Positions 5,727 to 59,784 of a stretch of DNA of 64,000 bases are shown here, piece after piece. The translations under genes were made by a program, and so were the position numbers. The notes under the pieces were generated by a model that worked only from the letters and a program-made list of their open reading frames with translations, did not search any database and had not been told where the DNA came from. Numbering within the stretch: position 1 is the first letter of the stretch; each line of letters begins with the position of its first letter. The stretch is taken from positions 1 through 64,000 of the IMG/VR virus record IMGVR_UViG_3300005965_000002. The stretch is one strand, 5' to 3'.

Positions 5727-5817
5727 TGGCGGAGGGTGAGGGACTCGAACCCCCAACACCCGAAGGTGACCGGTTTTCAAGACCGGAGCGGTCAACCAAA
5801 TTACGCTTTAACCCTCC
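5727..5817 (-). tRNA. tRNA-Ser(TGA)
   Basis: CCGGT-CTTGAAA-ACCGG, long variable arm, CCA. Confidence 0.92.
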
Positions 5818-14474: not shown

Positions 14475-14715
14475 AAAAAACCCCTCCCAGGTTTGCTGGA
14501 AGGGGTTTTTCTAACTATCGGTATCTTTTGCTTATTTCGTTAGAAGTTCCTCCCAGCTACTATTGTATTCGCACAGAGATATGAATACAATAAGGTCCAT
14601 GCGGCTGATGTCAGCACGGTATGCAAGGACTGTAGTGTGGAGGATGTCGATTTCATTTCTTTTTTCCCTTAAACAAGTTCATTCCTAATATACCTTTTTT
14701 TCGCTGGATATTCAA
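14475..14715 (-). promoter_or_regulatory. attenuator 1: promoter TTGAAT-N17-TATATT, leader ORF 14656-14540, antiterminator, terminator 14510-14475
   Basis: Leader MKSTSSTLQSLHTVLTSAAWTLLYSYLCANTIVAGRNF; GCTGGGAG..TTCTAAC pairs with GTTAGAA..CTTCCAGC of the terminator 5' arm. Confidence 0.85.
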
Positions 14716-16276: not shown

Positions 16277-17830
16277 TTACATTTTGTCCCTCCTTTTTTT
16301 CCATCTTTTCATAAGTTCTTTCTCCATATATTCTTTGGAAGGTTTCTTACCTTCTTTTTCAACGTATTCGTCCTCGATATCATTAACTATTCCAATAGCT
16401 ACTCCAACCTCAGGTCCAGCTTTTATATCGAGCAGTTCTTTTATCTCATTGCCGTTTAGGGGCGGCTTCTTCGATACAGGTACTTTTCTAGCTTGTTCTA
16501 TTTTTTCCCTTAGCATAGGAATTGAGTTACTAGGAGGTATTTTACCTAATTGATCTGCTTCAGCTAAATCGAGTAGAGAATCTACCAATTCGTCCCCAAT
16601 GCTTCTAATGAAACGACGTAATGCCTTTTCTGTAAGCTTTCCTTCTTCTAGATCTTTCGCCAAGGCATGGGGACGCATATGGTTTCTAACCATCTTTTTA
16701 ACCTTGTCGATATCTTTGACCTTAAAGTTCAGCCTCCTCATTATGCCCTCGGCTATTTCAGAGGCGGCAGCTTCATGGCCGTGGTGCTTTATTTCACCCT
16801 CCATCATAGATCTTGTTGCGGGCTTTCCAATGTCGTGCAGCAGAGCTGCCATCTGATTATTAAGACCAGGCTTTGCATTATCAAGCACCATAAGAGTGTG
16901 CGTCAATACATCACCTTCCTGGTGATGCCTCTCTGATTGCGTTTCCTCTTGTAGTGCTTTTACCTCGGGCAGTATGTGCTCAAGAAGACCGGTATCTCTC
17001 ATAAATTTAATCATAGAGGATAGTTTACCGTAATCAGCTATTTTTTCCATTTCCTCTTGGATACGCTCACTCGAAATGATATTAATTCGGTCTGCATTTC
17101 TTTTTACGGAGTCTATCATGTACTGTGGGATCTTCCAGTTGTATTTAGCTTTGAATCTCACAAGTCTGAGCATTCTCAATGGATCGCTCGTAAACATTTC
17201 ATCCAGGTTTACTTTCGGATGACCAGTAAGGTTTCCTTCTTCTATATCCTTCCGGCTACGCCCGGTAAGATCTTTTATCTCACCGGTAGATAAATCTTTT
17301 AAGAGCATGTTGACCGTAAAGTCACGCCTCATTATATCTTCCTCTACGGTGCCCGGCTCGGTTACTCTTTGCCTGGATTTAGGATCGGGAAAGGATTCCT
17401 TCTGGGAGTCAGCAAATTCTATTACTGCGCCCTGAGTCTGGTAGAGGTCACCTTTATAGTTAATGTTTTCCTTAAAGGTAATCTGCCATATCGGGTAAGA
17501 TTTTCCCATTTGATAAGGAGTCGATACAGATCCTGGATTCTCTTTGTTTAACGTAGTATTGATATATTTGGTCAGCTCTTCTGCGCCACCCCCCTTAGGG
17601 CTATCTACCATTATATCCAGGTCTTTGGCTTTTATTGAAGGATCTTTTTTTATTTTACTCAGATACTCATCGCGGACGTAACCGCCGACAGCATAAGCCT
17701 TACCTTTCCAAGGAGTGGTTGGTAGCCAATCTTTAAAAAGTCTTTCTACTTCTTTTTCTGCATCCGCAGCTACCTTTTTTAAAAGGTGGTTAGCTGCTTC
17801 TCTCAGTTTCGCTGCTGTCTTGAGTTCCAT
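16277..17830 (-). CDS. cca: CCA-adding tRNA nucleotidyltransferase with HD domain
   Basis: AVGGYVRD, DLD, RRDFTVN, DPLRMLR, SERI, LLHDIGKP motifs. Confidence 0.92.
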   Translation of the reverse strand: MELKTAAKLREAANHLLKKVAADAEKEVERLFKDWLPTTPWKGKAYAVGGYVRDEYLSKIKKDPSIKAKDLDIMVDSPKGGGAEELTKYINTTLNKENPGSVSTPYQMGKSYPIWQITFKENINYKGDLYQTQGAVIEFADSQKESFPDPKSRQRVTEPGTVEEDIMRRDFTVNMLLKDLSTGEIKDLTGRSRKDIEEGNLTGHPKVNLDEMFTSDPLRMLRLVRFKAKYNWKIPQYMIDSVKRNADRINIISSERIQEEMEKIADYGKLSSMIKFMRDTGLLEHILPEVKALQEETQSERHHQEGDVLTHTLMVLDNAKPGLNNQMAALLHDIGKPATRSMMEGEIKHHGHEAAASEIAEGIMRRLNFKVKDIDKVKKMVRNHMRPHALAKDLEEGKLTEKALRRFIRSIGDELVDSLLDLAEADQLGKIPPSNSIPMLREKIEQARKVPVSKKPPLNGNEIKELLDIKAGPEVGVAIGIVNDIEDEYVEKEGKKPSKEYMEKELMKRWKKRRDKM

Positions 17831-20387: not shown

Positions 20388-21443
20388 TTAAAAATCCTCT
20401 TTAGAGTTTTTTCTTAGTATCTCATAGATTTTTCGGCCCTGCTCTATGTTTTCCTTGGGCTCTTTTTTGCCTTCATTTTCTATCATTGATTCAATAAAGG
20501 CCTTTGTTTGTTCTTCATTGAGAGGAGGAGTACAGCGTATTCGTAGCCGTGGCTCGTCATCATATTCCAGAGTACCATAAATATCCTCATACTCCTTTAA
20601 AGCTTGCCGCTCAGCTTCATCAACAATCAAAGAAATGTTGCAATCATACAGTCCGGCACAGGAGAACGAACCTATCTCTAACAATCTCATTTCCCCTTCG
20701 GCAGTTTCACAGATGTCTATGACATACATAGGATCCGGATTGTAGCCCTCATTAGCTATTTCCTGTGCCTTTTTTAATGCAGCTTTATCTTTTGGGAAGT
20801 TAACGATATCGATTTCTCGGTATTTACCAGAGCTTATAGGTCCTATTCTTTCTTTGTACAAGCTGCCTGTAACTACTTTTTTATCTGATATAATAAATCG
20901 CCATTCCCTGATAATAACTTTAGGGGAGCTGATAATGACCAAAGAATGTGGCTCTGTGAATTCCTCTACCCAGTCCCAGTCGCTTTCAAAATGCTTCTCA
21001 TGGAAAACTTTTCCAGTAAAAGTTTTGTGCCCGGAACTCGGGCGCATAAAGAGAGCGTTTTCCTCACTACCAAAGGTCTTTTTAAGAAAACCCATTTGGC
21101 GAGGGACTTCTGCTCGGGGAAGCATTACGTAGTCGGAATTAAGATGGTGATGCCCTAAAGATGCATAATAACGAGAGCACTCGTACGCGATGCTGTTTAG
21201 CCAGGGACCTGGTACCCAGTAGTCCTCTTTTTGTAATTGTCTACAAAGATTAATAGATCCTTGCACAACAACGCAATCATGTCCTTTAAAAAAATGACTA
21301 TACTTCCCGCTTTTAAATGGGCGATATTTTACTACCTCGGTCTGTAGCCCCCGTCTACGGGTTTCTTCAGCTAATTTGTCAAACTTGTTATCCGCTTCGA
21401 AATCTTCTATTAACCATCTTGGTCTTACTTTAGCTATAGCCAT
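20388..21443 (-). CDS. ATP-grasp domain protein (DUF4343/R2K-like)
   Basis: FMRPSSGHKTFTG, EWRF, YVIDIC, EIGSFSCAGLY. Confidence 0.75.
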   Translation of the reverse strand: MAIAKVRPRWLIEDFEADNKFDKLAEETRRRGLQTEVVKYRPFKSGKYSHFFKGHDCVVVQGSINLCRQLQKEDYWVPGPWLNSIAYECSRYYASLGHHHLNSDYVMLPRAEVPRQMGFLKKTFGSEENALFMRPSSGHKTFTGKVFHEKHFESDWDWVEEFTEPHSLVIISSPKVIIREWRFIISDKKVVTGSLYKERIGPISSGKYREIDIVNFPKDKAALKKAQEIANEGYNPDPMYVIDICETAEGEMRLLEIGSFSCAGLYDCNISLIVDEAERQALKEYEDIYGTLEYDDEPRLRIRCTPPLNEEQTKAFIESMIENEGKKEPKENIEQGRKIYEILRKNSKEDF

Positions 21444-21612
21444 TTTTCAATTAAACCTTATAGTTATCACTTATTGAGTTTTTGTAGTTCTTGTTTTACT
21501 TCAGAAATATTTGTGTCAATACTTTCCAGCTTATCACATATGATAAGTAAAGAAAATAAAACTATGATTCCATATAGATATCGCATTATTAGGGTTCCTA
21601 ATTAAAATAAGA

Positions 21613-24081: not shown

Positions 24082-24304
24082 AAAAAGAGAAACCCCGCTG
24101 AACTTTCGCTCGGCGGGGTTTCTCTTGAATTCACTTTTATAAAAAGTTATCTTCGAGACCCCCGCCCGGGCATAATATCATCGCCACTATCAAAATCGAT
24201 AGCGCTCATGCTGATGATAAAAATGCTGGTTACGATAGTCATTGAAGATAAACTCCTATTCATTGGTTCGTTTCTAATATACCCTTTTGTTACAAGGAAT
24301 TCAA
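24082..24304 (-). promoter_or_regulatory. attenuator 2: promoter TTGAAT-N17-TATATT, leader ORF 24242-24147, antiterminator, terminator 24126-24082
   Basis: Leader MTIVTSIFIISMSAIDFDSGDDIMPGRGSRR (RBS AGGAG); GGCGGGGGTCTC pairs with GAGAAACCCCGCC. Confidence 0.85.
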
Positions 24305-41106: not shown

Positions 41107-41312
41107 TATCAAAGAACAAATAAAAAACCCCGGAGAACTCTTGGTTCGCCGGGGTTTTTGATTCTCTTATTGAGCTTTAATCTAGGCCAAAAGAATCCCT
41201 CCCAACGAACCTTCTGTTCGCGGTTGTTGTGGATTAGGATTATTCTGGTTCATGATAAACATAATTTTTCCTCGTCAGTACTAATATACCCTTTTGCAGT
41301 AAAAAATACAAA
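41107..41312 (-). promoter_or_regulatory. attenuator 3: promoter TTGTAT-N17-TATATT, leader ORF 41262-41182, terminator 41159-41122, boxA-like 41118-41107
   Basis: Leader MFIMNQNNPNPQQPRTEGSLGGILLA; GGTTCGTTGGG pairs with CCCGGCGAACC. Confidence 0.88.
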
Positions 41313-45563: not shown

Positions 45564-45637
45564 TACGCCCGGTAGGATTCGAACCTACGACTACCGGCTT
45601 CGGAAGCCGGGACTCTATTCCGCTGAGTTACGGGCGC
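45564..45637 (-). tRNA. tRNA-Arg(CCG)
   Basis: CCGGC-TTCCGAA-GCCGG; no CCA. Confidence 0.92.
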
Positions 45638-45942
45638 TTGCCTAATATGGAAATTCTTTGGCAGACTTTAGCCAGGTTGAGCCCCTCCACATCGGATACG
45701 TCAACCCCGTAGATTTCTTCTATTTTTTTAAAGTCTTCTCTTCTGTCTCTTTGAATTCCATCTTCTGTGAGCTCAAAGTTAAAATCATCTAACGAAGATT
45801 CGTCTGTAATAAAAGATTGCTTTATTCCATAGACCCTAAATAAAAGGTCATGTGCGATATCTTTGTAAGATTCGATTTCTATTTGAGGAGCAAAGTAAAA
45901 CTTTAGTTCGGGTTTTTCTTTCTTCATAATAACCTTTATAAA

Positions 45943-45982
45943 TGGTGGGCACAGTAGGATTCGAACCTACGACCCCCTGCTT
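45943..45982 (-). pseudogene. orphan 3' half of a tRNA (Val-like)
   Basis: AAGCAGG-GGGTC-GTAGGTTCGAATCCTAC-TGTGCCC-ACCA; no matching 5' half seen. Confidence 0.7.
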
Positions 45983-46051
45983 ACTAAGAACTATATAATA
46001 ATCTTTTAATATAATATACTTTTTTGTACCACTAAAATACAAAGGAATATT

Positions 46052-46843
46052 ATGAAAAATTGTTTATTGTGCGGAGACCTTATTCCAAATTGGATTAAAA
46101 TAGACGGGAAAAGGAAAAATATATCCAGTCGAAAATACTGTTTAAAATGTTCGCCTTATAAAAAACACAACACAAAAAAGTTACACTTAAATAGTAACTC
46201 CGAAAAATTTAAAAAATGTAAAAGCTGCGGTAAAAAACAATCTATTGATAAATTCAGAAAAAGAACAGATAGAGAAAATTTAAGGGTGCCTTATTGTAAA
46301 AAGTGCCAAAATAAAGAGATGCTGATTAGATATAAAAAAAGACACTATAAATTAAAACTCAAAGCTGTTAAATACCTGGGCGGGAAATGTCATGTTTGTG
46401 GTTATAGTAAAAACATACATGTTTTAGACTTTCACCATAAGAACCCAAAAATTAAAAAAGGAGAATTTATAAAATTTAAAAGCGAAGCACGCATTGAGAA
46501 AGAACTAGATAGGTGCGTGTTACTTTGCTCTAACTGCCATAGGGAGCTCCACTATAATGTAAAGAGTTCTAAAATAATTAAAAAAGACACAATAAGAATA
46601 AAAAAGCTGTTGCTTAGTCTAAAGCAAAAAGCTGTTACATACCTGGGAGGGAAATGTTCTGCCTGCGGCTATAAAAAATGTATAGCCGCGCTTGAGTTTC
46701 ACCATATTTCAAAGAGCAAAGAATTTAATATATCAAAGCCTAAATCAATAGTATTTGAAAAAATAAAAACCGAATTAGATAAGTGCTCCCTATTATGCTC
46801 TAACTGTCACAGGGAAACACATCATAATAGTTGCAAAAAATAG
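46052..46843 (+). CDS. free-standing endonuclease with two HNH domains
   Basis: Two copies of GGKC..CGY....L.FHH...C.LLCSNCHRE.H. Confidence 0.88.
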   Translation: MKNCLLCGDLIPNWIKIDGKRKNISSRKYCLKCSPYKKHNTKKLHLNSNSEKFKKCKSCGKKQSIDKFRKRTDRENLRVPYCKKCQNKEMLIRYKKRHYKLKLKAVKYLGGKCHVCGYSKNIHVLDFHHKNPKIKKGEFIKFKSEARIEKELDRCVLLCSNCHRELHYNVKSSKIIKKDTIRIKKLLLSLKQKAVTYLGGKCSACGYKKCIAALEFHHISKSKEFNISKPKSIVFEKIKTELDKCSLLCSNCHRETHHNSCKK

Positions 46844-46914
46844 GCGATCAGGGATTTGAACCCTGGATCTTTTGAATGTAACTCAAACGCTTTTACCAAC
46901 TAAGCTAATCGCCT
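46841..46914 (-). tRNA. tRNA-Val(TAC)
   Basis: TTTGA-GTTACAT-TCAAA; no CCA. Confidence 0.88.
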
Positions 46915-47109
46915 ATGTAAACTCTGTGGGCTATTTAGCAAACTTTATGAAATCTCAATATGGTGCTCTTTCCACATTTCTTTACTTACCAATCTTTTTG
47001 CGCCTACCAAGATGATTAATCTCCATCCATACAGATAAGCTAATTCTTCTCTACGTTCTTTAATAGCATCTTTTTCATTATGTCTCTGTATAAAAGTGAT
47101 GACCAGTAA

Positions 47110-47184
47110 CACCCCCGCCAGGATTCGAACCTGGAACTAACCGGCGTTCGTAGCGCCGTGCTCTATCCATTGAGCTACGGGGGC
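47110..47184 (-). tRNA. tRNA-Arg(ACG)
   Basis: CGGCG-CTACGAA-CGCCG; no CCA. Confidence 0.9.
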
Positions 47185-47187
47185 GTA

Positions 47188-47278: not shown

Positions 47279-47353
47279 TGGTACGCCCGGCTGGGCTTGA
47301 ACCAGAAACTCTCGCCTTAAGAGGGCGATACTCTACCATTGAGTTACGGGCGC
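47279..47353 (-). tRNA. tRNA-Lys(CTT)
   Basis: TCGCC-CTCTTAA-GGCGA; CCA. Confidence 0.92.
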
Positions 47354-47443
47354 ATATCATCAAAGAACATGGGCTTGCCCAGAATATAACCGGAGGCTCA
47401 ATGCCAAAGAGGCATTTTAACCATCTGAGCTATAAAGGCATAC

Positions 47444-47977
47444 CTATAAAAATTTTTTTATGTTTATTAGCTTTCCGTGTACTTCCGCGTGGCAACTCCT
47501 GCACAAGCATATGCATTTGTTTAGTTCTTTTTTTACTTTATCTAAATTTAACAGTTTGGATTTTGATATTATATAATCTTTTTTAGAAGGTTCTAAATGA
47601 TGAAATTCCAATGCTCCATAATACTTATTATATCCACAGATTAAACACTTACCGCCTAAATACTCTACCGCTTCTTTTTTTAATTTTATTTGCCTATCTT
47701 TAGTGCTGTTGCTACAACATAATTTACAGTAAGAGCTATACCCTCCGCTCTCCCTTTTATAAAACTCATTTAACTTCTTTTTTTTGTTGCATTTTGGGCA
47801 TAGCTTTTCTGACTTAATATCGATTCCTAATTCATCCGGTACGTGTAGCTTTTTTGTGTTATGCTTTTTATAGGGAGAACACCTTAAACAATATTTTCTA
47901 GAAAATAGATACTTCCATTCACCGTTTATTTTTTGATATCCCTTAAACTCTTTATTACATTTTTTACATATTGGCAT
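47444..47977 (-). CDS. HNH endonuclease, paralog of 46052-46843
   Basis: SRKYCL.CSPYKKHNTKKLH shared; GGKCLICGY..LEFHH..CRSCHAEVH. Confidence 0.88.
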   Translation of the reverse strand: MPICKKCNKEFKGYQKINGEWKYLFSRKYCLRCSPYKKHNTKKLHVPDELGIDIKSEKLCPKCNKKKKLNEFYKRESGGYSSYCKLCCSNSTKDRQIKLKKEAVEYLGGKCLICGYNKYYGALEFHHLEPSKKDYIISKSKLLNLDKVKKELNKCICLCRSCHAEVHGKLINIKKFL

Positions 47978-48051
47978 AATAACCTACACTATTTAATTGC
48001 TAAACCTTTGTGTTTAACAACTATAAATTAGTAGATTAGTACATATAATAG

Positions 48052-48125
48052 TGGGTTAGGAGGGACTCGAACCCTCGACTCCGATATTAAAAGTATCGTA
48101 CTCTAGCCATCTGAGTTACTAACCC
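48052..48125 (-). tRNA. tRNA-Lys(TTT)
   Basis: CGATA-CTTTTAA-TATCG; CTA tail. Confidence 0.92.
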
Positions 48126-48429
48126 ATTTTCCTTCCTTCAGCAGCGATGTCCCGACTTTCCTCTGCTAAATTCCCAGGTCTCCCAAGGCGTAGGGTCAGA
48201 GTATTCTATCTCTTTATCTTAGCACTAGGAGGATCCGGTGGAGCCGGAGGAGCATTTGAGTTATCAAACTGTCTCATAGCTCCTTGCTTCTTACCTTCTG
48301 TTAGTCGAATACTCCTATTATGATTTCTATCATCTTCAGCTCTATGAAAATTGACCATAGGGTCAGACTTCATATCAGCTTCGCTCTTTTTAAATATATA
48401 AGGTTTCTTTTTCATATTATCCCAGAAAT

Positions 48430-48637
48430 AAAAAAGCCCTCCGGATTCCTCCAGAGGGCTTTGTATCTTAAAAATGCTTTCGCTTTTAGATAAAAAGCCT
48501 AAATTCCCCCCTGTGGCTACCTTTACGGCGCTTTACTACGACTTTTACCTTTTTCACGATCATCAGCATAATTCCACCTAATTTCTTCAGTTTTCTTCTC
48601 GTACTTATAATATACCACTTAGAACTCCTTATTTCAA
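48430..48637 (-). promoter_or_regulatory. attenuator 4: promoter TTGAAA-N17-TATATT, leader ORF 48569-48486, terminator 48462-48430
   Basis: Leader MLMIVKKVKVVVKRRKGSHRGEFRLFI; GGCTTTTTATCT pairs with AGATACAAAGCC, and CAGGGGG with CCCTCTG. Confidence 0.88.
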
Positions 48638-49512
48638 ACACTTCCTAAATATTTTTTTACTAAGTCTTTGTATACGGATAGGTACTTTAGGTATATCTCA
48701 TTAAAATACACTGCGTTAGGATAGGCCCAGTCCCACGATAAAAATTTATCACTATCTGGAGCGTTAGGTCCTGTAAAATGTACAATGCGTGCTGATTGGG
48801 GAGGAGACCCGACGTCACGCAGGGAGCCGAATGATACCTGATAATTATACAGATAGCTTTGGCTAATTGGTATGTTTAAGACGTTACACCATAGTGTTAT
48901 AATACTTTGATCGGCATACGCACAATACTTAATAAAATCCTTTGAGAGGTCACATAATAGATTATAATAAAAAGGTGTCCTGTACTTTTTGGGAATCATA
49001 AAGACACCAGCGTTTGCCATGCTATTAGGACCGTCTGGGTATTTAATACCGTATCTATTAAGTTTTCTTTGTAGTTTCTTATCGTGCCTTTTATCCTGGC
49101 CAAAGACCCTGACTATTGTATAGGGCTCGTGATTAGAAACTATAAAGAAATCGTGTTCTTCAAAAATATAGTCCAAATTTCTTTGTACAATAGTATCGCA
49201 ATCTAAATAAAGCACATTATCGTATTCATCAAAATCTGATGTCCATAGGTTGTACTTAAGGTAGACCCCTGGATGATTCACAGGCCCTAAACTCTTTTTT
49301 TGAGCCCTAAAATTTTCCCTGTAGAACATATCCTTTAACTCTACGTTTACTAGAGTTCTTAAAAGATTTCTAATCTCTGTGTTTTGTCCTTCGTAATAGA
49401 CTAAAATTTTTGGGTGTGATGGGTAGTTAGTTACTATACTACCCACCAGCGCCCTGGCATAATTCAAGTATCTATCATCGAAGTAAAAAGCTATTGCGTT
49501 TTTCTTAGACAT
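48634..49512 (-). CDS. glycosyltransferase family 8
   Basis: VLYLDCD, NAGV, ADQS, YNYQ, IVHFTG. Confidence 0.85.
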   Translation of the reverse strand: MSKKNAIAFYFDDRYLNYARALVGSIVTNYPSHPKILVYYEGQNTEIRNLLRTLVNVELKDMFYRENFRAQKKSLGPVNHPGVYLKYNLWTSDFDEYDNVLYLDCDTIVQRNLDYIFEEHDFFIVSNHEPYTIVRVFGQDKRHDKKLQRKLNRYGIKYPDGPNSMANAGVFMIPKKYRTPFYYNLLCDLSKDFIKYCAYADQSIITLWCNVLNIPISQSYLYNYQVSFGSLRDVGSPPQSARIVHFTGPNAPDSDKFLSWDWAYPNAVYFNEIYLKYLSVYKDLVKKYLGSV

Positions 49513-58145: not shown

Positions 58146-58270
58146 AGCCCCGGGTTGGATTCGAACCAACGATGGAGGTCTTCAGTCACCCAGCAAACAG
58201 CCTCTCAACTGGTCGCGAGTTCAATTTAACCACTGGGTATTGTCGCCGTGTGCCTTCTCGGCTCCAGGGC
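58146..58270 (-). ncRNA. 125-nt tRNA-like RNA (acceptor and T arm, long helix replacing anticodon arm)
   Basis: GCCCTGG/CCGGGGC-U; GTTGG-TTCGAAT-CCAAC; ACCCAGT/GCTGGGT helix. Confidence 0.65.
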
Positions 58271-59592: not shown

Positions 59593-59784
59593 AAAAAAAA
59601 CCCTGTCAGTTTTAGTCCTGACAGGGTTTTATTCGACTTATGCAATAGATACCCCATCAGGACATTATAGTACCCTCGCCTTCTCCTTCTCTTCCTTCTA
59701 TCCTGATGGTAGTCGTAGCAATCATAATTTTTCCTTAAATTGGTTCGTTATCTTTAATATACCAATTAACGACCGAAAATTCAA
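59593..59784 (-). promoter_or_regulatory. attenuator 5: promoter TTGAAT-N17-TATATT, leader ORF 59725-59657, terminator 59630-59593 (boxA-like at 59450-59439)
   Basis: Leader MIATTTIRIEGREGEGEGTIMS; GTCCTGATGGGGT pairs over 13 bp with ACCCTGTCAGGAC. Confidence 0.9.

Follow-up and report, generated by a model that had tools for sequence, protein, structure and literature searches.

The leader-peptide attenuators of enterobacterial amino-acid biosynthesis operons (trpL, hisL, leuL, thrL, ilvL and pheL) combine a promoter-proximal short open reading frame (ORF) carrying clustered regulatory codons with an intrinsic terminator and an antiterminator. The 5' strand of the antiterminator is covered by a ribosome at the leader's stop codon and freed by a ribosome stalled at the regulatory codons, and the regulatory codons can themselves pair with region 2 in a 1:2 element (for example, PMC3082878). 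In Escherichia coli, the pheM leader attenuator of the pheST (phenylalanyl-tRNA synthetase) operon controls a component of the translation apparatus itself in response to the supply of charged tRNA. In T-box riboswitches, antitermination is decided by the state of a specific tRNA and the specificity is written as a codon in the leader RNA; T-boxes bind uncharged tRNA directly, need no translation, have conserved Stem I, specifier and T-box sequences, and control synthetase and amino-acid genes. Phage-encoded tRNAs can replace host tRNAs lost during infection, and T5 tRNA-Lys neutralizing PARIS and phage tRNAs with altered anticodon loops evading anticodon nucleases are documented (PMC11464382 and PMC10264068). 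Why large phages carry tRNA genes has been debated for decades, and the candidate reasons are codon compensation, replacement of a decaying host pool and escape from tRNA-cleaving defences.

We analysed a window of 64,000 nt (positions 1 to 64,000 of IMG/VR record IMGVR_UViG_3300005965_000002) from the 258.6-kb genome of an uncultured jumbo phage from a salt lake. An earlier note, made from the sequence alone, had described a leader with twelve consecutive Val/Lys/Arg codons in front of Lys, Arg and Val tRNAs and proposed that it acts as a counter-defence sensor. We found that the described arrangement is real, that the reading as a leader-peptide attenuator is supported, and that the narrower reading as a sensor of nuclease attack on tRNA-Lys is not established; the note's interpretation is thus supported only in part.

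A leader ORF, a terminator and a tRNA block

To define the locus, we annotated promoters, ORFs, terminators and tRNAs. The elements of the module lie on the minus strand, and the neighbouring and sister features are listed with them.

48609-48637 (-), promoter-like site of sigma-70 type: -35 TTGAAA (48637-48632), 17-nt spacer, extended -10 TGgTATATT (48617-48609); 10 of 12 matches, with TG. The -35 overlaps the stop codon of the upstream glycosyltransferase gene (48634-49512).
48574-48579 (-), Shine-Dalgarno (SD)-like AGGTGG, 4 nt upstream of the leader ATG.
48486-48569 (-), leader ORF of 27 codons plus TAA, MLMIVKKVKVVVKRRKGSHRGEFRLFI*.
48522-48557 (-), regulatory run, codons 5-16: GTG AAA AAG GTA AAA GTC GTA GTA AAG CGC CGT AAA.
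48492-48516 (-), region 2, the 5' strand of the antiterminator (CCACAGGGGGG...GGCUUUUU), within the last codons of the leader and ending 3 nt before its stop codon; it includes a 9-nt in-frame insertion (GAAUUUAGG) that relatives lack.
48425-48462 (-), intrinsic terminator, AAAGCCCUCUGGAGG-AAUC-CGGAGGGCUUU (-22.8 kcal/mol), followed by UUUUUUAUUU.
48206-48415 (-), 69-aa ORF of unknown function, the first gene after the terminator; no Pfam family matches.
48051-48125 (-), tRNA-Lys(UUU).
47444-47977 (-), HNH endonuclease ORF (177 aa; PF01844) inserted between the two Lys tRNAs.
47354-47445 (-), degenerate 5' fragment of a tRNA, resembling the Lys(CUU) tRNA that follows the terminator in relatives L003 and L004.
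47279-47353 (-), tRNA-Lys(CUU).
47109-47185 (-), tRNA-Arg(ACG); with inosine at position 34 it would read the CGC and CGT codons of the leader.
46840-46915 (-), tRNA-Val(UAC), probably the last tRNA of the attenuated unit.
46052-46843 (+), HNH endonuclease ORF (263 aa) on the opposite strand, separating Val(UAC) from the half-tRNA and Arg(CCG).
46013-46042 (-), promoter-like site TTGTAT-N18-TATATT, upstream of the half-tRNA and Arg(CCG).
45941-45982 (-), approximately, orphan tRNA 3' half (variable region, T-arm GTAGGTTCGAATCCTAC, acceptor strand and CCA).
45564-45637 (-), tRNA-Arg(CCG).
59599-59784 (-), sister module L1: promoter 59784-59756, leader MIATTTIRIEGREGEGEGTIMS* (59725-59657), terminator 59628-59599; precedes Glu-UUC, Glu-CUC, Gly-GCC, CAU (Met or Ile2), Gly-UCC, Thr-CGU, Arg-CCU and Arg-UCU.
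41126-41311 (-), sister module L3: promoter 41311-41283, leader MFIMNQNNPNPQQPRTEGSLGGILLA (41262-41182, ending in TAG), terminator about 41156-41126; precedes Asn, Gln, Asn, Gln, Pro-GGG, Pro-UGG and the CUA suppressor tRNA.
24085-24304 (-), sister module L4: promoter 24304-24276, leader MTIVTSIFIISMSAIDFDSGDDIMPGRGSRR* (24242-24147), terminator about 24126-24085; precedes Phe, Asp, Asp and Ser-GCU.
14479-14715 (-), sister module L5: promoter 14715-14687, leader MKSTSSTLQSLHTVLTSAAWTLLYSYLCANTIVAGRNF* (14656-14540), terminator 14507-14479; precedes Cys, five Leu (two of them split by introns), Tyr, three Ala, Trp, His, two Thr and Ser-GGA.

A short ORF with a start codon and an SD thus lies close behind a promoter-like site and upstream of the tRNA genes. 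The terminator-like site, the strongest in 44-54 kb, has a 13-bp stem with 7 G-C pairs (48462-48433) followed by a T-tract. All five leader modules carry the same promoter motif, and the pattern GTATATT-N(10-40)-RRAWWTATG occurs three times in the window against 0.04 expected, always at a leader. A 51-codon GTG-start ORF (48641-48486) was considered as the real gene and rejected, as the promoter lies inside it and the SD-ATG at 48569 is the conserved start.

The downstream tRNAs are those listed in the earlier note. Its label of 'Val-like' for the half-tRNA was not confirmed, as this fragment has no anticodon and its best matches are spread over Asn, Val and Arg tRNAs. The note was also correct that CGG, the codon read by tRNA-Arg(CCG), is absent from the leader, which it regarded as an exception to the rule. 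We infer a plausible structural explanation: this tRNA lies beyond the HNH gene on the opposite strand and behind its own phage-type promoter-like site, and may therefore not belong to the attenuated unit. No TATATT-type promoter lies between 48609 and 46147 on the minus strand, although weaker sigma-70-like sites occur between the terminator and the tRNAs (48003-47976, 47597-47568 and 47105-47077) and could bypass the attenuator.

Alternative structures and codon match in five modules

We next asked whether the terminator has a mutually exclusive competitor. With a ribosome footprint on codons 5-12, the segment upstream of the stop codon pairs with 13 nt of the terminator's 5' arm at -19.7 to -22.4 kcal/mol, and 3-22 of 300 shuffled sequences do as well. 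In relatives L003 and L004 the pairing is a clean 11-bp helix of -26 to -32 kcal/mol that 0 of 300 shuffles match. With the ribosome on the stop codon, only -1.5 kcal/mol of structure competes with the terminator. The minimum free-energy fold also pairs the regulatory codons with region 2, giving a 1:2 element. The window's own copy is weakened by the 9-nt insertion, which splits the antiterminator helix; with the ribosome on the last regulatory codons the pairing is no better than shuffled sequence by duplex energy, and this copy may respond weakly. All five modules show the same geometry, with antiterminators better than shuffled controls and terminators of 13-19-bp G+C-rich stems followed by 6-8 U.

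To test whether the codon run could arise by chance, we examined the whole genome. A run of 12 codons drawn from three or fewer amino acids is not rare by itself, as about 34 such runs occur in the six frames. This window is nevertheless the genome-wide best 10-codon match to {K,R,V}, and the best windows for {K,R,V}, {E,G,M,T,R} and {N,Q} are exactly the three leaders in front of those blocks. The run is also the best hit of an unbiased scan for codon windows matching the tRNAs that follow them (binomial p = 1.9e-7 among 10,578 windows). Eleven of its 12 codons are cognate by strict wobble to the four tRNAs that follow; the exception is GTC, which is not cognate to Val-UAC. Of the 26 leader codons after the ATG, eleven are cognate to the module's own tRNA block. 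Across the five modules the true leader-to-block assignment scores 67, the unique maximum of 120 permutations, and the next best scores 52. A cognate codon is present in the module's own leader for 38 of the window's 39 tRNAs, Arg(CCG) being the only exception, whereas random ORF windows give 19.6 +/- 3.1 with a maximum of 33 in 20,000. The match extends to isoacceptor anticodons: AAA/AAG with UUU/CUU, five Leu codons with five Leu tRNAs, and AGC/AGT with Ser-GCU only.

Conservation in relatives and recurrence in other phages

We compared the locus with three relatives (L002, L003 and L004) in which the flanking glycosyltransferase is only 71-75% identical in amino acids. The relatives encode the leaders MLMIVKKVKVVVKRRKGSHRGLFI (L002 and L003) and MLLFVKKVKVVVKRRKGSHRGLFI (L004). 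The -35, the extended -10, codons 5-20 and 21-24 (in the relatives' numbering) and both terminator arms are invariant, and the nucleotides of the 12-codon run are identical in all three. The 5' UTR and codons 2-4 vary, and within the terminator substitutions fall only in the loop. This conservation pattern is that of a functional element. The 69-aa ORF is present in L004 but absent in L002 and L003, where tRNA-Lys begins about 10 nt after the T-tract, so that the regulated product is a tRNA.

Comparison with sequencing runs returned only DNA contigs, which gave sequence variants but say nothing about transcripts. Only DNA runs contain this sequence and there are no expression data of any kind, and translation of the leader, termination and read-through are therefore unobserved. 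A variant without the 9-nt insertion was seen in runs X4 and X6. In a related population the HNH gene between the Lys tRNAs is replaced by other sequence (joint 47355->48130 in run X6). The orthologue of tRNA-Lys(CUU) carries anticodon UUU in L004 and in runs X4, X6 and X8 (47321 G>A). The pair of isoacceptors {Lys-UUU, Lys-CUU}, which matches the AAA and AAG codons of the leader, is kept across relatives even though different tRNA scaffolds carry the two anticodons.

In more distant phages the principle is conserved while the sequence diverges. The loci L006 and L100 have leaders FNNQPNNPQP and NNNQPNNPQP, each followed by a different terminator whose mimic spans the stop codon, before Asn/Gln/Pro tRNAs (p = 3e-7 and 4.5e-9). 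Genome G004 has the leader FALLPVLPVFDAAAYEW with terminator and antiterminator before Tyr/Ala/Val/Glu/Leu/Phe/Asp/Trp/Pro tRNAs. Genome G006 has three leaders matching Leu/Ser, Glu/Gln/Arg and Trp/Cys/Gly/Val/Ala/Thr blocks, although these end 10-80 nt before the first tRNA and lack a hairpin-plus-U-tract terminator. In L005, an L4-type leader tracks a block that also holds Ile and Met tRNAs. No diverged Lys/Arg/Val-type leader was found in the distant phages examined; Lys blocks in G002, G003 and G004 have hairpins but no matching ORF, and the 314-kb record behind L006 was not searched for one. G003, L098, L049, L051, L055, L068 and L078 gave no convincing leaders, and at least G003, L098, L049 and L051 are related jumbo phages. 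Megablast of the region against GenBank phages returned no match, and a degenerate back-translated pattern of the V/K/R run gave no hit in IMG/VR. A search for related loci with the PRPP synthetase found nothing; with the glycosyltransferase it found one distant locus with no tRNAs nearby. Most IMG/VR loci around CCA-enzyme homologues have no tRNAs within 10 kb. A database-wide scan of all phage and bacterial tRNA clusters for an upstream short ORF whose codons match the downstream anticodons was not run.

A proposed tRNA supply circuit and its relation to known systems

The best explanation, in which we have fairly high confidence, is that this is a ribosome-mediated transcription attenuator that gates a block of phage tRNA genes by sensing how fast the codons read by those same tRNAs are decoded. 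In this model, host RNA polymerase starts at the sigma-70-type promoter, or reads in from the glycosyltransferase gene, and a ribosome loads on the leader. If Lys-, Arg- and Val-tRNAs for AAA, AAG, CGY and GUR are plentiful, the ribosome would run to the UAA stop and cover region 2 (CAGGGGG..GGCUUU), the terminator hairpin would form and transcription would end about 175 nt from the start. If any of these aminoacyl-tRNAs is scarce, because the host pool does not meet phage demand, because it decays or because tRNAs are cleaved, the ribosome would stall in codons 5-16, and region 2 would stay free and pair with the terminator's 5' arm. The polymerase would then read on into tRNA-Lys(UUU), tRNA-Lys(CUU), tRNA-Arg(ACG) and tRNA-Val(UAC), and the new tRNAs would relieve the stall, closing a negative feedback loop. 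The four sister modules would do the same for the other blocks, each leader acting as a codon-level table of contents. Sequence analysis shows the elements, the alternative pairings, the correspondence between leaders and tRNAs, and the conservation, whereas we infer that the leader is translated, that termination is conditional and what the physiological trigger is. The SD lies only 4 nt from the ATG, which weighs against the model, as does the fact that an attenuator senses charged tRNA and would also fire on amino-acid starvation, when making more tRNA would not help. The split antiterminator helix of the window's own copy, the weaker promoter-like sites behind the terminator, the non-cognate GTC codon, the absence of Arg-CCG from the leader, the lack of such leaders in some related jumbo phages and the lack of canonical terminators in G006 also count against it.

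The reading proposed in the earlier note is that of a counter-defence sensor; in this view the attenuator was selected mainly to detect cleavage of host tRNA-Lys and other tRNAs by anticodon nucleases such as PrrC or PARIS AriB and to answer with replacement tRNAs. This is possible but in our view unlikely, and a sensor of attack on tRNA-Lys does not explain the other four modules. In its favour, Lys codons make up 5 of the 12 regulatory codons, Lys tRNAs come first in the block, the genome carries a CCA-adding enzyme, and relatives carry RtcB-, RlaP-, Acb2/Tad1- and Apyc1-like genes near the tRNA region, a tRNA-repair and anti-defence neighbourhood. However, the five modules cover tRNAs for 19 amino acids plus an amber suppressor, far broader than any known anticodon-nuclease target set, which argues for a general gauge of decoding capacity rather than a Lys-specific alarm. 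The anticodon loop of the phage Lys-UUU tRNA looks canonical (CUUUUAA), and nothing in the sequence separates nuclease attack, one of several conditions that would trip the device, from ordinary imbalance of supply and demand. Neither the host nor any defence system is known, and induction by an activated nuclease was not measured.

We consider the remaining alternatives less likely still. The attenuator could regulate the downstream protein genes (the 69-aa ORF and the HNH endonuclease) or report amino-acid starvation, with the tRNAs merely co-located and made from their own promoters; the 69-aa ORF comes first in the window and in L004, weak promoter-like sites precede some of the tRNAs, and classical attenuators respond to amino-acid supply. 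Against this very doubtful reading stand the absence of the 69-aa ORF from L002 and L003, the HNH gene being an insertion that relatives lack, and the isoacceptor-level codon match, which sensing of amino acids does not explain. About as improbable is that the leader controls Rho access, RNase processing or folding and maturation of the first tRNA, with the hairpin as a processing or stability element. The G006 leaders, and a strong hairpin before tRNA-Lys in G004 without any ORF, would fit this view, but all five modules in the window have textbook terminators, each with an antiterminator mimic at the leader's stop codon, exactly as conditional intrinsic termination predicts. Chance, a basic short ORF in an A+T-rich genome that happens to sit before the ordinary terminator of the upstream operon, is the most remote possibility: K- and R-rich frames are easy to obtain in DNA of 38.6% G+C, low-diversity runs are common and the glycosyltransferase gene has no other terminator, yet the codon statistics, the five parallel modules with shared promoter, SD and geometry, the invariant leader core amid diverged flanks and the independent recurrences in distant phages all speak against it.

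A bolder reading, which we consider more likely than not, is that a clade of jumbo phages runs a self-addressed tRNA supply circuit, in which the leader codons enumerate, isoacceptor by isoacceptor, the anticodons encoded downstream, including an amber stop codon for an amber-suppressor tRNA. The phage would thus measure the cell's decoding capacity codon by codon and top up only the tRNAs that are limiting. This would be the first case of leader-peptide attenuation controlling tRNA genes and a direct, built-in read-out of why phages carry tRNAs. Such a device would show that the phage treats its tRNAs as a demand-driven resource, and would turn the debate into an assay of which conditions trip a leader fused to a reporter. 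It also gives annotators a simple rule for finding such elements, and the leaders could serve as compact, programmable sensors of the supply of specific tRNAs.

Studies of phage tRNAs as counter-defence describe the tRNAs themselves, and full-text literature searches found no described cis-acting sensor that gates their transcription, nor an earlier description of this device. No T-box match was found at the gathering score or at E <= 1, and the specificity here lies in a translated ORF. The pheM attenuator controls a synthetase, for one amino acid, in a cellular genome. We also examined E. coli pheV as a tRNA gene with a possible attenuator, but in the K-12 sequence it has only a promoter and a leader of a few nucleotides, and no leader ORF. 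No curated Rfam leader family (His_leader, Phe_leader, Thr_leader, Leu_leader, Trp_leader, PyrG_leader and others) reaches its gathering score anywhere in the window; the best sub-threshold hits, PyrG_leader (31.4 bits against 65), Phe_leader (22.7 against 55) and His_leader (19 against 49), are all driven by the terminator. The proposed mechanism is that of the enterobacterial amino-acid operon leaders, without sequence similarity to them, and the finding extends trp-type attenuation to viruses, to multi-amino-acid, isoacceptor-specific leaders and to a new class of target, the tRNA genes themselves. The leaders mix 3 to 9 amino acids and appear to be chosen codon by codon to match the anticodons of the block, the modules come as a series of five along a phage tRNA region, and the regulated genes are tRNA genes rather than biosynthetic enzymes, so that the sensed molecule and the product are the same kind of molecule.

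A leader module upstream of Lys, Arg and Val tRNA genes

The window is the first 64 kb of a single-contig virus record of 258,580 bp with 38.6% G+C, and the sequence is present in DNA runs from hypersaline-lake metagenomes. The phage has no close cultured relative: a megablast search against GenBank phages found nothing, and the best protein match of its CCA-adding enzyme was 33% identity to an uncultured 735-kb phage. ARAGORN identified 37 tRNA genes, all on the minus strand, and Rfam confirmed these and added two group I introns. We examined the span 48637-48425 on the minus strand and found the following elements, in order.

Promoter-like site, TTGAAA-17 nt-TGgTATATT
Shine-Dalgarno sequence AGGTGG, 4 nt before an ATG at 48569
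27-codon ORF, MLMIVKKVKVVVKRRKGSHRGEFRLFI followed by a stop, ending at 48486
48462-48433, the strongest terminator-like hairpin of the neighbourhood, with 13 pairs and -22.8 kcal/mol, followed by UUUUUUAUUU

Codons 5-16 of the ORF are GTG AAA AAG GTA AAA GTC GTA GTA AAG CGC CGT AAA, exactly the twelve Val, Lys and Arg codons that an earlier note had reported. Downstream of the hairpin lie, in order:

69-aa ORF
tRNA-Lys(UUU)
47977-47444, minus strand, HNH endonuclease ORF
47445-47354, degenerate 5' fragment of a tRNA
tRNA-Lys(CUU)
tRNA-Arg(ACG)
tRNA-Val(UAC)
46052-46843, plus strand, second HNH ORF
45982-45941, orphan tRNA 3' half
tRNA-Arg(CCG)

The observation made in the note is therefore correct in every particular but one, in that the half-tRNA, which the note described as Val-like, cannot be given that label. 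HNH homing-endonuclease ORFs sit between tRNA genes and next to tRNA debris, and one HNH gene is replaced by other sequence in a related population. Two more tRNA-like 3' ends (a T-arm plus an acceptor strand), at 58170 and 4600 on the minus strand, are not called by ARAGORN or Rfam and may be pseudogenes or further split tRNAs. The tRNA-Ala(CGC) call at 5727-5817 is 91 nt long and barely passes Rfam (31 bits).

Codon correspondence and geometry of the five modules

To ask whether the module is more than chance, we first counted similar runs. A 12-codon run drawn from three amino acids is not rare in this A+T-rich genome, and about 34 such runs occur in the six frames. What is not chance is where this run sits and what surrounds it. 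When all six frames of the whole genome were scanned, the single best 10-codon window for {K,R,V} was this one; the best for {E,G,M,T,R} lies just upstream of the Glu-Glu-Gly-Met-Gly-Thr-Arg-Arg tRNA block and the best for {N,Q} just upstream of the Asn-Gln-Asn-Gln(-Pro-Pro) block. Inspection of these places showed five modules built alike, each with a TTGAAT-like -35, a (TG)gTATATT -10, an SD, a short ORF and a strong terminator. In addition to the module described here, these are, all on the minus strand:

59784-59599, leader module L1
41311-41126, leader module L3
24304-24085, leader module L4
14715-14479, leader module L5

We next compared leaders and tRNA blocks at the codon level. Each of the four further leaders is composed of codons cognate to the tRNA block that follows it. 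The leader-by-block matrix of cognate codons is strongly diagonal: the true assignment scores 67, the unique maximum of 120 permutations, and the next best scores 52. Two tRNA genes missed by ARAGORN, tRNA-Leu(UAA) and tRNA-Leu(UAG), at about 13207-12360 and about 3750-2870 on the minus strand, are split by ORF-containing group I introns of about 770 nt inserted between U34 and A35, the classic cyanobacterial and plastid tRNA-Leu intron site. With them, the Leu codons of the L5 leader (CTA, TTG, CTG, TTA and CTC) correspond to five different Leu tRNAs, and 38 of the window's 39 tRNAs have at least one cognate codon in the leader that precedes their block. Random ORF windows of the same lengths gave 19.6 +/- 3.1, and never more than 33 in 20,000 trials. 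An unbiased scan of every codon window 40-900 nt upstream of a tRNA ranked the V/K/R run first, at p = 1.9e-7 among 10,578 windows. L3 is the only one of the five leaders that ends in TAG (41184-41182), and its block is the one that contains the amber-suppressor tRNA (anticodon CTA, 31041-30968). This could be coincidence (about a 1 in 3 chance) or part of the sensing; after the TAG the frame continues for 4 codons to a TAA, so suppression would carry the ribosome closer to the terminator.

To study the geometry of the switch, we folded the modules with ribosome footprints imposed and observed the same logic in all five. With the ribosome stalled at the regulatory codons, and the terminator's 3' arm not yet made, a segment at the end of the leader ORF pairs with the terminator's 5' arm, with energies of -11 to -21 kcal/mol for the last regulatory codon and -22 to -44 for the first. 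In the V/K/R module this segment ends 3 nt before the stop codon. With the ribosome on the stop codon, the segment is covered and nothing competes with the terminator (-0.3 to -2.5 kcal/mol). In each case the segment is a near-copy of the terminator's 3' arm, and the unconstrained MFE additionally pairs the regulatory codons with it, giving a 1:2 element.

Relatives show the design of the V/K/R module most clearly. There, CAGGGGGCUUU (codons 18-22) forms an 11-bp helix with AAAGCCCUCUG of the terminator, at -26 to -32 kcal/mol, which 0 of 300 shuffles reach. The window's copy carries a 9-nt in-frame insertion (GAAUUUAGG) that splits the helix, giving -19.7 to -22.4 kcal/mol, which 3-22 of 300 shuffles reach. 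When the footprint sits on the last Arg and Lys codons, the remaining pairing is no better than shuffled sequence by duplex energy, and this copy may therefore be a weaker switch. The insertion is polymorphic in nature.

Comparative evidence from related phages

Homologues of the upstream glycosyltransferase (71-75% amino-acid identity) led us to three contigs, L002, L003 and L004, that carry the same module. Their alignment showed invariant -35 and extended -10 elements, a variable 5' UTR and variable codons 2-4, followed by a stretch from GTG AAA AAG through both terminator arms that is identical in nucleotides apart from the 9-nt indel, with substitutions confined to the terminator loop and the inner spacer hairpin. 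This is the signature of a cis-acting RNA element with constrained codon identity, not of a protein gene. In L002 and L003 the 69-aa ORF is absent and tRNA-Lys(CUU) starts about 10 nt after the T-tract, so the constant cargo is the tRNA. The Lys pair is maintained in an instructive way. The tRNA scaffold that carries CUU in the window carries UUU in L004 and in three other runs (47321 G>A), and the scaffold that supplies CUU there survives in the window only as the fragment beside the inserted HNH gene, so that the UUU/CUU pair is kept. Both AAA and AAG occur in the leader.

To reach more distant genomes, we used homologues of the phage's CCA-adding enzyme (16277-17830, minus strand; PolyA_pol head, RNA-binding and HD domains), which is encoded inside the tRNA region, 1.6 kb upstream of leader L5. 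Thousands of homologues exist in metagenomes, many of them on contigs of more than 200 kb. In the close relative L005 (87% identity), an L4-type leader, ...SFIEGDSIDFDRFMDDIM..., precedes Phe, Met, Met, Ile, Asp, Asp and Ser-GCU tRNAs, the homologous block (L005:1736-2464) holding two CAT tRNAs and Ile-GAT between Phe and Asp. This explains the otherwise unmatched Ile (ATC, ATT) and Met codons in which the window's L4 leader (24242-24147) is rich; its block has no Ile or Met tRNA and appears to have lost tRNAs that its leader still 'asks for'. Loci L006 and L100 (56-58% identity) have the leaders MIRTFNNQPNNPQPGDNLLG and MIRKNNNQPNNPQPGDILLG, respectively, both ending in a stop codon. Each is followed by a different terminator whose 3'-arm mimic (GGGGTAAAGGCTT) spans the stop codon, and then by Asn, Gln and Pro tRNAs (p = 3e-7 and 4.5e-9).

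In the 253-kb phage G004 (loci L089 and L090), MNKFALLPVLPVFDAAAYEWLTAGRELCG and its stop codon, with a terminator and an antiterminator, precede Tyr, Ala, Val, Glu, Leu, Phe, Asp, Trp and Pro tRNAs. A repeated motif, GGTCTTTGACAATCGA, which contains TTGACA, lies just upstream of tRNA blocks in this phage (merged coordinates about 2340 and about 19960), in one case between the attenuator's terminator and the first tRNA, which would give the block a second, unattenuated promoter. In the 411-kb phage G006 (IMG/VR record 3300033489_000001; loci L093 and L094; about 231440-231660, 247200-247440 and 249950-250130), three promoter-proximal leaders match their blocks: SLLLSLSLLL before Leu/Ser, YQQRQQREQE before Glu/Gln/Arg, and TTTLTVTTATRCTVVVCAAAA before Trp/Cys/Gly/Val/Ala/Thr (p = 7e-8 to 3e-6). 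These leaders end 10-80 nt before the first tRNA with no hairpin-plus-U-tract terminator, and the same coding principle may work there through another mechanism, such as processing, Rho, or folding of the first tRNA. Other jumbo phages that we examined showed nothing convincing (G003, L098 and the L049, L051 and L068 group). We found no diverged Lys-type leader, so for this particular module the comparative support comes only from near relatives. At L002:1095-1328, L098:12710-13483, and L006:12117-13262 and 20501-21572, relatives carry an Acb2/Tad1-like sponge gene, an anti-Pycsar Apyc1-like gene, and RlaP- and RtcB-like genes close to the tRNA and CCA-enzyme region, a neighbourhood that therefore mixes tRNA supply, tRNA repair and anti-defence functions.

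Proposed mechanism and comparison with known attenuators

The best-supported model is classical ribosome-mediated attenuation applied to tRNA genes. In this view, fast decoding of the V/K/R run takes the ribosome to the stop codon, the segment at the end of the leader (region 2) is masked, and the terminator forms. Slow decoding of AAA/AAG (Lys-UUU and Lys-CUU), CGC/CGU (Arg-ACG) or GUA/GUG (Val-UAC) would stall the ribosome, region 2 would then pair with the terminator's 5' arm, and RNA polymerase would read into the tRNA genes. Their products would relieve the stall, giving negative feedback on the supply of exactly those tRNAs. Our analysis demonstrates the sequence elements, the pairings, the correspondence between leaders and blocks, and the conservation; that the leader is translated, that termination is conditional and what the natural trigger is are inferences, made in the complete absence of expression data, which is the main weakness of the model, the weakened antiterminator of this particular copy being a lesser one. 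The attenuator interpretation is nevertheless strongly supported in silico.

The interpretation offered in the note was supported in part, as its call of an attenuator agrees with our data, whereas its reading of the cassette as a counter-defence sensor is unproven. That reading is compatible with the model, because a nuclease that removes tRNA-Lys would trip the switch, and phage tRNA-Lys is known to neutralise PARIS (PMC11464382). However, five modules spanning nearly the whole genetic code point to a general gauge of decoding capacity. The note had also listed the absence from the leader of CGG, the codon read by Arg(CCG), as an exception to the rule, and this is plausibly a matter of operon structure: Arg(CCG) lies behind a convergent HNH gene and its own TATATT-type promoter-like site at 46042-46013, and no such site lies between the attenuator and Val(UAC).

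Full-text literature searches found no description of leader-peptide control of tRNA genes, in phages or in cells, although few subscription journals were covered and prior description cannot be excluded. We also examined E. coli pheV as a possible precedent, and it has no leader ORF. The module is not a member of any curated leader family or of the T-box class. Its architecture is that of the trp, his, leu, thr and pheA attenuators (mechanism as in PMC3082878), from which it differs in its target (tRNA genes), its multi-amino-acid and isoacceptor-specific leaders, its serial arrangement and its viral setting.
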